Virus record (IMG/VR): IMGVR_UViG_3300042261_002390 | Location: 182,150-246,149 of that record | Direction: 5' to 3' (one strand) | DNA: 64,000 nt | In this document: piece after piece, positions 18,360 to 22,012 of the stretch | Numbering within the stretch: the stretch's first letter is position 1 | How the letters are laid out: every line of letters begins with the position of its first letter | Program-made: the position numbers and the translations under genes | Notes under the pieces: model-generated | Databases searched by the model: none | What the model saw: only the letters and a program-made list of their open reading frames with translations | Told to the model about the DNA's origin: nothing

Positions 18360-18734
18360 ATGAGTTGGAAATGTATTAACGATATCTACAACGAAAAAGA
18401 TGTAATATTATTTTTTGAGAATGTGTCCTATGAAGAACAGGATGATAGGGGCGAGTCTGATGATATTGCGATTTGCCTTTGTGATGAGCTTGGCATTAAA
18501 CAGTATTTGGTTGACCAATTTGTTAGGAATAATTTTATCGAAGAACTGGATGAAGAACCAGATGTGGTTGAATTACTGAAGAAAAACATTCATGATGTAA
18601 TGATTGCAAACGGACGAAGTGAAAAATACTTTAGTATTTATTGGGCAATCTGGTGGTCAAAGGTGAGCATCGAATGTAAAATTGGTTTGTTTAAAACATT
18701 TGAACAAATAAAAAATAAAAACGATGACAATTAA
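18360..18734 (+). CDS. hypothetical acidic protein
   Basis: 124-aa ORF. Confidence 0.65.
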   Translation: MSWKCINDIYNEKDVILFFENVSYEEQDDRGESDDIAICLCDELGIKQYLVDQFVRNNFIEELDEEPDVVELLKKNIHDVMIANGRSEKYFSIYWAIWWSKVSIECKIGLFKTFEQIKNKNDDN

Positions 18735-20100
18735 ACGAATATTAGACGAAATTGCTAACGAATCCAGTACTTTAAAGAAAACGGAAATCGTTACTAAGTA
18801 TAAGGACAACGAATTGTTTAAACGTGTATTGTACTTGGCTAACTCGAAAAGGGTTAAGTTCTATATCAAACAAATCCCTGAGTATGATAAAACAAAGGGT
18901 AAATCTGATAATTTGTTGATTGGTTTAGAACAATTATTGGTGCTGAGTAACAGGGAGCTAACAGGTGCAAATGCAATTCATCATCTAAAACAGATATTGG
19001 AATTTCTTACACCTGATAATGCATACGTTATCGAACGTGTCATTGAAAAAGATTGTAAGATTAATTTCGGTACTCGAATGATTAACAAAGTCTTCCCGGA
19101 TTTGATTGAACGTACTGGTTATATGGGATGCAAACCATATTCTAAAGATTTGGTGTTAAAGCTATTGGCAAAGGGTAGCGTTTACAGTCAGGAAAAAATG
19201 GATGGTAGATATATGAATTCTATTATTCAAGGTGGCGAAATTTTAAACGAATCACGTCAAGGTGAGCCGACAATACTTGAAAATCCGTATTTTTTCACTG
19301 AATTATCACAATTAAAAGATTGTGTATTAAATGGTGAGTTGACGATGAATGGCGTAAATCGCTACGAATCAAATGGTATTATTTCATCGTTAATAACCAT
19401 TGCAACCAAAAAGAGCGAAGGAAAAGACGCATCTAAAGACATTGCAAAACTTGAAAAAAAACATATGCCTTATCAACAGGCACTGGATTTGGTTCGATTC
19501 ACAGCATGGGATATCTTGACAATTGATGAATATTTTACACGAAAATGTAAAAGACCATACAGTGAAAGGCTTGAAGATTTGAATGAAACATTAAAGGATT
19601 GTAAAATGCTTTCAGTTGTTGAAACACGTGAAGTATCAACCATTGAAGAAGTAATGCAACATTTCAATGAAATTCTTGAACAGGGTGGTGAAGGTACTGT
19701 TGTTAAATCAAAAGATGGTGTTTGGGCAGATTCAAAACCAGCCTATCAAATTAAGGTAAAAAAAGAAATGAATCTGGACTTACGTATTATCGGTTTTAAT
19801 TACGGCACTAAGGGCACTAAAAACGAAAACGTGATTTCTTCACTGGTTTGCCAATCTGAAGATGGATTATTAGTAACGTCTCCCGGTGGTATGGATGAAG
19901 ATACAATGGATTACGTCACTGAAAATATGGATAAACTATTTGGAACAATAGAAGAAATGAAATGTTCAGGTCTATCCAAAGACAATGAAGGTAATTATTC
20001 AACATTACATCCTAGACATTCTAAGTTTAGAGATGATAAGAATATTGCAAATACTTTGGCTGAATGTATTGAAATTGATAAATCTTGTTCATTGTTATAG
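18724..20100 (+). CDS. lig: ATP-dependent DNA ligase (T4 gp30-like)
   Basis: EKMDGRY (KxDG), LNGEL, EGTVVK, KVKKE and a C-terminal OB-fold with HPR..FRDDK. Confidence 0.92.
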   Translation: MTIKRILDEIANESSTLKKTEIVTKYKDNELFKRVLYLANSKRVKFYIKQIPEYDKTKGKSDNLLIGLEQLLVLSNRELTGANAIHHLKQILEFLTPDNAYVIERVIEKDCKINFGTRMINKVFPDLIERTGYMGCKPYSKDLVLKLLAKGSVYSQEKMDGRYMNSIIQGGEILNESRQGEPTILENPYFFTELSQLKDCVLNGELTMNGVNRYESNGIISSLITIATKKSEGKDASKDIAKLEKKHMPYQQALDLVRFTAWDILTIDEYFTRKCKRPYSERLEDLNETLKDCKMLSVVETREVSTIEEVMQHFNEILEQGGEGTVVKSKDGVWADSKPAYQIKVKKEMNLDLRIIGFNYGTKGTKNENVISSLVCQSEDGLLVTSPGGMDEDTMDYVTENMDKLFGTIEEMKCSGLSKDNEGNYSTLHPRHSKFRDDKNIANTLAECIEIDKSCSLL

Positions 20101-20524: not shown

Positions 20525-20812
20525 ATGAAAAGCTTATTTTTATCTTACTGTACAGAATATGAAGCAGGTTGGGGTTCAAAACCTGATGGATTTATTCTTG
20601 CCGATAATCTTGAAGCCTGTGAAGCTGAGATTAAACGTGTTGAAGATATCGGTTCACATGAAATGTATTGGCGTTATAGTAAACCAGAAGAAGTGTTTTG
20701 TGAAGATGAAACATATGCCAAATATGAATCATTAAAACCTGAAGGAAATCAATATGTTGGTTTCAACAGTAACAAAAGTATAAAAGATTTTGTGTTGTAT
20801 AGGAGAATATGA
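20525..20812 (+). CDS. hypothetical protein
   Basis: MKSLFLSY start; TATATTTG box at 20493-20500. Confidence 0.65.
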   Translation: MKSLFLSYCTEYEAGWGSKPDGFILADNLEACEAEIKRVEDIGSHEMYWRYSKPEEVFCEDETYAKYESLKPEGNQYVGFNSNKSIKDFVLYRRI

Positions 20813-20969
20813 GCGTAGATGACGGAATTGGTAGACGTAAGATGGCGTGGCACAAAAGTGTACATCTAGTATTAAATAGGACACGAGGGAAAGTTGGTAG
20901 TGTAATCTATGACGATAGATAAGAGAATCCAATCGTTTAATACTGCAGGTTCGAGTCCTGCTCTACGCA
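20813..20969 (+). ncRNA. tRNA-like RNA (Leu/Ser-type D and T arms) with an 18-nt anticodon loop and a 77-nt variable arm
   Basis: Acceptor GCGTAGA/TCTACGC, D arm ACG-GAATTGGTAGA-CGT, AGATG/CATCT stem, AGTATTAAA/TTTAATACT stem, T arm GCAGG-TTCGAGT-CCTGC; no CCA. Confidence 0.75.
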
Positions 20970-21139
20970 CGATTACTAACATTGGTGGCTGCATGTTGAA
21001 ATTGTCGGATAACGTGCCATGATAGTTTAAAGACTGTAAAAAAGGAAGCACCGACTGAAAGGAAAGTTCACAACTAAACCTAAGTTTTAGTTGGGTTTGA
21101 TAAATTAAACCTGACAAATTTTAATTAAAAACAGATTGT

Positions 21140-22012
21140 ATGGCTTATCTAAACATTGACAATTTATATTTAGCACAGGAAATTCTTTTATTTAAGGAAG
21201 CTTATGCGTTGGAAAAAATTCATGGAACATGCACACACATTGGATGGAATGCTGAAAATAAGCAAGTTCATTACTTTAGTGGTGGTGAAGAACACACAGC
21301 ATTTGTCGAATTATTTGATACAGTAAATATAAGGGCAAAATTCGAAGAATTGTTTCCGGATAAGAAAGTTGTAATCTATGGCGAATGCTATGGTGGAAAG
21401 CAGCAGGGCATGTCACATGTCTATGGAAAACAATTAAAGTTCATTGCTTTTGATGTGAAGGTTGATGGCGTGTGGTTAAACGTACCAAATGCTGAAGACG
21501 TTGCAAGTAAATTCGGACTTGAATTTGTTCATTATGACCGGATTGATGTTACATTAGAAAACCTTAAAGCTTATATGGAAGCACCTTCTGTTCAAGCTAT
21601 TCGTAATGGTATGGGTGACAATAAGCCACGTGAGGGTGTTGTATTGCGACCATTGATTGAATTGAAAATGAACAATGGCGAAAGGGTTATTGCTAAATAT
21701 AAGCCTGAAAAGAACATGGAAACAAAAACCAAGCGTGAAGTCAGTCCGGAACAATTAAAGATATTAACTGATGCTAAGGATATTGCAGAGGAATGGGTTG
21801 TTCCAAACAGGTTAGACCATGTATTGCAAAAATTTCCTGTCGATGTTAGCATGGAATCAATGGGCGATATTGTTAAAGCAATGATTGCCGACGTTTATCG
21901 TGAAGGTAGAAACGAGATTGTTGAATCTCAAGCTGTTTCCAAAGCGATTGGCAAAGAAACTGTTATATTGTTTAAACGAAGGCTTGAAGCAAAATTGAAA
22001 AACAATTTTTAA
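21140..22012 (+). CDS. RNA ligase, Rnl2 family
   Basis: EKIHGT (motif I), IYGE, FIAFDV, EGVVLRP, IAKYK. Confidence 0.85.
   Translation: MAYLNIDNLYLAQEILLFKEAYALEKIHGTCTHIGWNAENKQVHYFSGGEEHTAFVELFDTVNIRAKFEELFPDKKVVIYGECYGGKQQGMSHVYGKQLKFIAFDVKVDGVWLNVPNAEDVASKFGLEFVHYDRIDVTLENLKAYMEAPSVQAIRNGMGDNKPREGVVLRPLIELKMNNGERVIAKYKPEKNMETKTKREVSPEQLKILTDAKDIAEEWVVPNRLDHVLQKFPVDVSMESMGDIVKAMIADVYREGRNEIVESQAVSKAIGKETVILFKRRLEAKLKNNF

Follow-up and report, generated by a model that had tools for sequence, protein, structure and literature searches.

According to the current view, phages use tRNA genes and RNA ligases to counter host defences which cut tRNAs. To our knowledge, it has not been established with which RNAs most phage RNA ligases naturally interact, nor what the species 1 RNA of phage T4 does. 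This species 1 RNA (rnaC, NC_000866 70908-71046, 139 nt) is the closest known analogue of the element described here, a tRNA mimic in the genome of a giant (jumbo) freshwater phage. Both RNAs are about 140-160 nt long and possess a canonical T arm (CCGGG-TTCGAAT-CCCGG in T4), a closing acceptor-like stem and a long structured interior without an anticodon loop; species 1 lies beside tRNA genes and its record assigns no function to it. However, the closing stem of species 1 is imperfect, a tRNA-Leu D arm is absent, and the gene is located at the end of a tRNA array, with neither a pseudoknot RNA nor an RNA ligase gene behind it. A blastn search with the mimic against GenBank phages, T4 included, gave no match, and by eye the generic T loop alone is common to both.

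With class II tRNA-Leu the mimic shares the D-arm word, the 3-bp D stem, U8, A14, G18 G19, T54-C56, A58, the pair G53-C61 and A73 as well as unpaired bases flanking the variable arm, whereas the 7-nt anticodon loop and U33 are missing and the variable arm comprises 77 nt instead of about 13-20 nt. The tRNA-like domain of tmRNA is likewise a non-decoding fold with acceptor and T arms. However, the mimic has no tag reading frame, carries G-C and not G-U at position 3:70 and reaches less than half the length of a tmRNA. ARAGORN and the Rfam model RF00023 were also negative, in line with an earlier note on this DNA which had considered the element too short and wrongly arranged for a tmRNA. YrlA is a tRNA-like non-coding RNA from an RNA-repair context, encoded together with Ro/Rsr and the RtcB ligase; the stem which binds Ro is made up of its two ends (5' and 3'), and its acceptor-like helix is closed by a loop. 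A Ro/TROVE protein with a tRNA-like partner is also mentioned in PMC7824862. In the mimic, by contrast, the ends form the acceptor stem, and a Y RNA or YrlA was rejected, as a search of the 246-kb record (about 75% complete) found neither a TROVE (Ro) domain nor an RtcB gene and Rfam gave no match. Plant mitochondrial t-elements and the tRNA-miRNA transcripts of the gammaherpesvirus MHV68 are non-decoding tRNA shapes at which RNase P and RNase Z define the ends of the neighbouring RNA. Their mechanism is the one that we propose for the mimic, which would play a corresponding role in a different kind of organism and without homology.

The window, i.e. the whole stretch of 64,000 nucleotides which was analysed, represents bases 182150-246149 of a 246-kb IMG/VR virus record. 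Near-identical DNA is present in freshwater and lake-water metagenomes from two studies, and a 97% relative in a wastewater metagenome. One metatranscriptome of a related study contained nothing of the phage, its sole match being the tRNA-Leu of another organism. The genes are arranged in the order adenylosuccinate synthetase, ATP-grasp protein, ATP-dependent DNA ligase, two small ORFs, mimic and RNA_ligase-family gene (Table 1). The earlier note had placed the mimic between the DNA ligase region and an Rnl2 RNA ligase. Both ligase neighbours are indeed there, but the name Rnl2 goes too far: the protein is assigned to PF09414 and phrog_548, and because a comparison with solved structures by sequence gave no match its Rnl2 identity is not established. 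Upstream of the closest cultured or GenBank relative of this ligase (LR745208.1, 52% identity), an RNA of this kind is absent. Elsewhere the phage genome encodes a PolyA_pol/CCA-adding-type nucleotidyltransferase (G000:C1:136175-136561, L061) in an open frame of 545 aa.

Table 1. Features of the mimic, the RNA behind it and the neighbouring genes; positions are those of the window.
Feature	Position	Strand	Remark
ATP-dependent DNA ligase gene	18724..20100	+	same order in L002, L016
Upstream ORF, 95 aa from ATG, phrog_11243 (function unknown)	20525..20812	+	TGA stop abuts mimic base 1
Acceptor stem, 5' strand GCGTAGA	20813..20819	+	same acceptor in L016, L028 mimics
Class II (tRNA-Leu-type) D arm ACGGAATTGGTAGACGT, G18 G19	20822..20838	+	identical word in genuine tRNA-Leu genes
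Anticodon-arm substitute AGATG/CATCT with inner GCAC-AAAA-GTGT hairpin	20840..20867	+	no 7-nt loop, no U33
Expanded variable arm: 9-10-bp stem, GTTGG/CCAAT helix, ATCTAT-GACG-ATAGAT hairpin	20868..20944	+	single copy in genome
T arm GCAGG-TTCGAGT-CCTGC	20945..20961	+	in minimum-energy fold
Acceptor stem, 3' strand TCTACGC, and discriminator A20969	20962..20969	+	no CCA encoded
Conserved double-pseudoknot RNA	20970..21057	+	starts right at discriminator end; covariation
P1 helix	20978-20984 with 20992-20997	+	AACAY/RTGTT
PKa	20986-20989 with 21016-21019	+	P1 loop GGC with downstream GCC
PKb	21004-21008 with 21051-21055	+	GTCGG/CCGAC in window
Variable hairpin	21022-21037	+	within double-pseudoknot RNA
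AAAGGAAAGTT-N4-ACTAAACCTAA motif with hairpins 21072-21092 and 21093-21112	21058..21115	+	conserved in relatives
RNA ligase family gene (PF09414, phrog_548)	21140..22012	+	downstream of mimic and pseudoknot RNA

The mimic (20813-20969) has a class II tRNA frame with U8, a 3-bp D stem, a tRNA-Leu D loop, A at position 26 and a TTCGAGT T loop. All seven of the seven acceptor pairs are Watson-Crick pairs; TG joins the 5' strand to the D arm, a single A separates the D arm from the anticodon-arm substitute, and the bases after the discriminator read CGA and not CCA. Instead of a decoding arm, the AGATG/CATCT stem closes an 18-nt loop with a hairpin of its own. In the variable arm, 77 nt in total, the stem AGTATTAAA(T)/(G)TTTAATACT closes an interior of 57-59 nt; with the outermost pairs left open, positions 44/45 and 47/48 would flank the arm as in tRNA-Leu. 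The minimum-energy structure calculated with RNAfold comprises all of these helices. Sequence and fold agree here with the earlier note, which had described 157 nt with perfect acceptor, D and T arms, intact stems and no CCA, and between these arms a non-decoding anticodon arm and a very long variable arm. The tRNA frame is far beyond chance. The stems specific to the insert are AU-rich, and compared with shuffled sequence the two arms have z-scores of -0.6 and -1.0 and the whole element one of -1.5. As this stability is unexceptional, support for them comes from conservation instead.

The ARAGORN and Rfam scans suggested by the same note left the mimic uncalled. ARAGORN reported neither a tRNA nor a tmRNA, and nothing in Rfam reached the gathering score, the T arm alone being matched by RF00005 (17.3 bits against a cut-off of 29, E = 0.93). 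Among the features of a canonical tRNA, the mimic possesses the 7-bp acceptor, the D arm with G18 G19 and a TTCRANY-type T loop, and lacks the 5-bp anticodon stem with 7-nt loop, U33 and a purine at position 37. Standard tRNA finders thus miss a whole class of tRNA-shaped jumbo-phage genes, which affects tRNA counts as well as the annotation of non-coding RNAs in viral metagenomes. tmRNA, Y RNA, known ribozymes, riboswitches, GOLLD and ROOL were rejected as candidates, Rfam being negative at gathering and at permissive E-values for the window and 14 related loci.

The 21-nt D-arm word GATGACGGAATTGGTAGACGT has exact copies in ordinary tRNA-Leu genes of phage tRNA arrays and metagenomes, and because of this identity we derive the mimic from a tRNA-Leu. 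An intron-containing tRNA was considered and rejected. An exhaustive single-deletion search yielded one weak solution where about two are expected by chance, with the anticodon CCA, two G-U pairs in the stem, an 82-nt 'intron' and a non-canonical site. Neither a bulge-helix-bulge motif nor a group I intron nor a known self-cleaving ribozyme was detected in the mimic. A genuine tRNA-Leu(UAA) interrupted within the anticodon by a long group I-type insertion (assigned by eye) is, in contrast, found in L050. Insertion of a repeated or mobile element was also rejected, as the insert is single-copy in the genome.

A search with the D-arm word led to two IMG/VR contigs, L012 and L013, which harbour tRNA-Leu-like units with aberrant middles, and L012 also has the window's sequence 3' of the discriminator. 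Two patterns made from this downstream sequence retrieved 27 further loci. When the window, L012 and L013 are added and duplicates removed, the set amounts to 19 distinct loci, the majority of them located on contigs of 30-360 kb. The conserved unit is longer than the earlier note saw, with the mimic as a 5' module and a pseudoknot RNA reaching to about position 21115.

This downstream RNA was examined in a covariation alignment of 15 sequences (the window from 20970 to about 21115 and 14 relatives) for the helices P1, PKa and PKb. Taken together, 94.3% of the cells of the three helices are paired, and both-sided changes occur in 7 of the 16 pairs (21 cells). In 500 shuffles the observed values for percentage paired, cells with both-sided changes and covariation score were never attained, and slid controls were 25-44% paired. 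PKb reads GACGG/CCGTC, GTAGG/CCTAC, GTGGG/CCCAC, AGCGG/CCGCT and ATCGG/CCGAT elsewhere, and the CGA after the discriminator is nearly invariant. A second subtype (L013, L016, L018, L028) has a different hairpin-loop pseudoknot, which covaries by inspection (GAGCAAA/TTTGCTC, TGGGCAA/TTGCCCA, AGGCA/TGCCT). Both subtypes end with AAAGGAAAGTT-N4-ACTAAACCTAA and a hairpin with the loop GATAAAT(G/T)AA. In the first locus set the invariance of this motif is given by construction, because the motif was the search pattern. In many relatives the last hairpin is followed by a T run and looks like a terminator, with a start codon 17-60 nt further on, and in the window it has no clear T run.

Other interpretations of the 3' part were rejected. 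As AAAGGAAAGTT-N4-ACTAAACCTAA occurs once in 246 kb, it is not a promoter-like repeat. A coding region is opposed by the lack of reading-frame conservation among relatives; in another relative the 3' hairpin region contains indels whose lengths are not divisible by three, which fits non-coding sequence. Positions 21061-21083 of the window and their equivalents in L033 and L036, GGAAAGT(T/C)C..AACTAAACCT(G)CTTA, look like CR-I and CR-V of RNase P RNA placed side by side. However, this likeness (GGAAAGT(C/T)C...ACTAAACCTGCTTA) is mentioned as a remark only, since the RNase P models gave no match and the sequence is unable to form a P4-like helix.

The pseudoknot RNA of the window and of related loci matched no Rfam family, and in GenBank phages it is absent, as is the mimic by blastn. 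Among 185,579 species genomes the sole match is a contig of 362,763 bp filed under a Paceibacterota MAG. This contig (L062, JBAZIW010000001.1, Candidatus Paceibacterota) has the same length and match position as the IMG/VR contig L017 (IMGVR_UViG_3300029288_000055), which carries the pseudoknot RNA together with a phage-type RNA ligase. L062 is therefore probably a jumbo-phage contig which ended up in a bacterial MAG during binning.

The downstream RNA begins precisely at the end of a tRNA-shaped gene (N73 followed by CGA) in 15 of the 19 loci. Twelve of these genes are anticodon-less mimics (98-164 nt) and three are ordinary tRNAs (L031, L033, L038; 47-67 bits). Three further loci retain the 3' remnant of a tRNA-shaped gene alone, and the L035/L037 lineage has none. 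Anticodon-less mimics were identified in the window and in L012, L013, L016, L018, L021, L022, L028, L029, L032, L034, L036 and L053. Their acceptor, D and T arms are kept, while the middles are hypervariable and without common sequence. The window mimic shows the family traits, namely the tRNA frame, a closed hairpin for the anticodon arm, a larger variable arm, and N73-CGA with the pseudoknot RNA behind it. These units make up a previously undescribed family of anticodon-less tRNA-Leu-like mimics, each located directly 5' of the conserved pseudoknot RNA and usually with an RNA ligase gene further downstream. Family members carry either A or U as discriminator, and this speaks against a conserved role directed at LeuRS. 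The homologue and covariation searches advised in the earlier note thus had a mixed outcome: mimic relatives were found and the downstream RNA covaries, but the window's own insert has no homologue in IMG/VR, JGI metagenomes or GenBank phages.

A short type of mimic (L016, L018, L021, L028, L029, L053) has acceptors near that of the window (GCGYRGR; identical in L016 and L028). By inspection, a 4-6-bp hairpin with a GAAA, GGGA or similar (GNRA-type) loop replaces the anticodon arm, and the stem of the variable arm compensates (GGCAG/CTGCC, GGCAA/TTGCC, GTATA/TATAC, GATAG/CTATC, GACGG/CCGTC). In a MAFFT alignment of the six short mimics the variable arm was not structurally consistent, and for this reason these compensatory changes are given by inspection only. 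The loop of the variable arm contains, again by inspection, a palindrome of 8-10 nt (GGTGCACC, AAGTGCACTT or CCGGCCGG). Such palindromes in the loops of a covarying stem could mediate loop-loop dimerisation. No exposed palindrome is found in the window mimic, where TGTACA lies within a stem and CTGCAG at the junction of variable arm and T stem. The window mimic is an expanded member of the short type which is devoid of the exposed palindrome.

The wastewater relative allows a comparison at short distance. Its contig covers 20815-21069 with seven substitutions and one deletion (about 3%), whereas the upstream ORF, compared on this or sister contigs, shows differences at 20 of 165 positions (12%) and the ligase gene at 9 of 107 (8%). 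Six of the differences fall into the mimic. Four of them are unpaired (one in the AAAA loop, two in the open interior, and one at G57 of the T loop, which is changed to A); the other two, a deletion of U65 and a change of G123 to A, affect the partners of the terminal U-G pair of the long stem. Under random placement such avoidance of stems has P of about 0.006, a value obtained from one low-depth contig. Within the limits of this single contig, the pattern indicates purifying selection on the mimic stems.

In 11 distinct loci the RNA unit is followed on its own strand by a gene for an RNA ligase (PF09414), and these ligases fall into three subfamilies: the type of the window (window, L012, L017, L018, L020, L032), an OB-fold (PHA02142) subfamily (L016, L019) and a third one (L013, L021, L029). 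Small ORFs or an endonuclease VII gene are sometimes inserted between RNA unit and ligase gene. L032 has a Thg1-like gene next door, and in L016 a DNA ligase is encoded upstream, as in the window. In five loci the pseudoknot RNA forms part of a tRNA array, and there the retrieved flanking sequence contains no ligase and the T run is missing. L002, by protein search the closest ligase-bearing contig (64% identity), has no mimic. The linkage to ligases belongs to the longer unit of mimic and pseudoknot RNA and not to the mimic alone. This covarying unit, tied to three RNA ligase subfamilies, is a concrete RNA to test with those enzymes. As a separate observation, the RNA ligase gene of L029 (L029:3510-5654, minus strand) is split by an intein with a LAGLIDADG homing endonuclease, and other loci have endonuclease VII, LAGLIDADG and GIY-YIG genes dispersed in the surroundings of the RNA unit.

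The reading that we prefer, to which we give a probability of roughly 0.45, is that the non-decoding mimic is excised by tRNA-processing enzymes and in this way punctuates the transcript and sets the 5' end of the downstream RNA, a role in trans being possible in addition. The mimic keeps those parts which such enzymes would read, i.e. the acceptor/T-arm minihelix, the D/T elbow and the class II core. It would be co-transcribed with the upstream gene, whose stop touches its first base. A cut by RNase P at G20813 would free the upstream mRNA, and an RNase Z-type cut after A20969 would release the mimic, which might then gain CCA from the phage's own CCA-adding enzyme. The latter cut would at the same time generate the 5' end (CGAUUACUAAC...) of the double-pseudoknot RNA, or ligase leader. 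The mimic would thus form the stable 5' part of a composite RNA within an island of nucleic-acid-repair genes, and once released it may also serve as a surrogate substrate or a decoy for RNA-repair or tRNA-end enzymes.

We favour punctuation because RNase P, RNase Z and CCA-adding enzymes read tRNA shape, and because the upstream stop touches base 1. Moreover, since the slot 5' of the pseudoknot RNA takes real tRNAs as well as unrelated-looking mimics, the shared requirement is the shape of a tRNA and not decoding. In at least one lineage the tRNA handle is dispensable, because the downstream RNA of L035/L037 has no tRNA in front. Pure punctuation leaves the structured, selected inserts and the GNRA-type hairpin and palindromes of the short type unaccounted for; these features suggest that the released RNA does something more.

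What this might be is addressed by an alternative which we regard as unlikely on the whole, namely that the mimic is a stable tRNA-shaped decoy or sponge which soaks up host proteins binding the body or the ends of tRNAs, such as defence tRNases directed at the acceptor end or the arms, tRNA-modifying toxins or a synthetase. Its intact elbow, acceptor stem and class II core could be bound by body-recognising proteins, and tRNA-mending enzymes are at hand, with RNA ligases and the Thg1-like protein of L032 encoded nearby in relatives and a CCA-adding enzyme in the window's own genome. Inserts that are selected yet free to differ between phages would also fit a decoy. Jumbo phages carry countermeasures of tRNA repair and tRNA supply (PMC7824862). 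However, in the absence of an anticodon loop classical anticodon nucleases cannot be baited, which makes a decoy for them unlikely; the A/U variation of the discriminator renders a conserved synthetase target improbable, and the phage has a single copy per genome.

Rather less probable in our view is a leader acting in cis as a damage sensor, in which the pseudoknot senses, the last hairpin terminates and the state of the tRNA bait sets read-through into the ligase gene. RNA-repair operons regulated by damaged tRNA are known, though there the regulation is via a protein. The layout is attenuator-like, with hairpin and T run 17-60 nt before the ligase start in L012, L016, L019, L020, L029 and L032, and the link holds over three ligase subfamilies. 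Yet the five loci in tRNA arrays have neither a ligase found downstream nor a T run, the last hairpin of the window itself lacks a clear one, other ORFs intervene between RNA and ligase gene in several loci, and by eye there is no conserved anti-terminator, one candidate pairing being restricted to the L019 group.

It is just as doubtful that phage RNA-repair systems have a novel RNA component which consists of mimic and pseudoknot RNA. They would then be either a tRNA-damage sensor in cis, which switches on the ligase when host tRNases strike, or a tRNA-shaped partner of ligase and end-healing enzymes, and the short relatives may self-associate via their palindromic loops.

That the mimic is itself a substrate or partner of the ligase is improbable. 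Here the inserts of an interrupted tRNA would be cut out and its halves sealed again, or the RNA would be circularised or joined to the downstream RNA. Cleavage by RNase P and RNase Z leaves 5'-phosphate and 3'-OH ends, as ATP-dependent ligases require, and the mimic adjoins RNA ligase genes. However, removal of the insert restores an anticodon arm at chance level only, the closed GNRA-type hairpin of the short relatives makes an anticodon loop impossible, and the search for a bulge-helix-bulge, a group I intron or a known self-cleaving ribozyme was negative. Splicing of the mimic by the ligase thus seems unlikely.

A functionless tRNA-Leu pseudogene in decay, or a tRNA gene disrupted by an insertion, is very improbable in spite of the tRNA-Leu ancestry, the thermodynamically unremarkable insert stems and the closest ligase-bearing relative (L002) without mimic, because of the family and the pattern of change: the helices of the tRNA frame are all perfect, many diverged phages have similar anticodon-less units with compensating stems at the homologous position, the rate of change of the element is 3-4 times lower than that of the flanking genes and its changes avoid stems, and the insert is neither a repeat nor a mobile element of the genome. 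The earlier note had already argued against decay from the intact stems, and the syntenic L012, L032, L016, L021 and others, which are also without anticodon loop, together with the stems kept in the 97% relative, bear it out.

Several other aberrant tRNA-like sequences came up in these phages. Two paralogous RNAs of 135 nt are located at L015:961-1095 and L015:2886-3020 (G000:C1:81460-81594 and 83385-83519). Both have a 7-bp acceptor stem and a T arm, no anticodon arm, and z of about -3; in the first, which has an encoded ACC behind it, a tmRNA model scores weakly (18.8 bits). Near these RNAs, GIY-YIG-like ORFs (judged from sequence) are found between tRNA genes. With introns allowed, ARAGORN predicts a 'tRNA-Pyl (cta)' with an insert of 1086 nt just upstream of the window (G000:C1:175088-176267) and a 'tRNA-Gly' with an insert of 44 nt at 83551-83687; both may be interrupted or aberrant tRNA genes, or artefacts. 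A conserved non-coding stretch of about 200-290 nt, absent from the window, lies 5' of the mimic in L012 (L012:2440-2679), L022, L029 and L018; it starts with AAGTTCTTTGAAAAT, ends with TTGGAA.GACAGAAAGA and has no Rfam match. Finally, a tmRNA-like match of 43 bits (cut-off 47) is situated at L035:1788-2144, in the tRNA array of a 326-kb phage contig which also carries the pseudoknot RNA.
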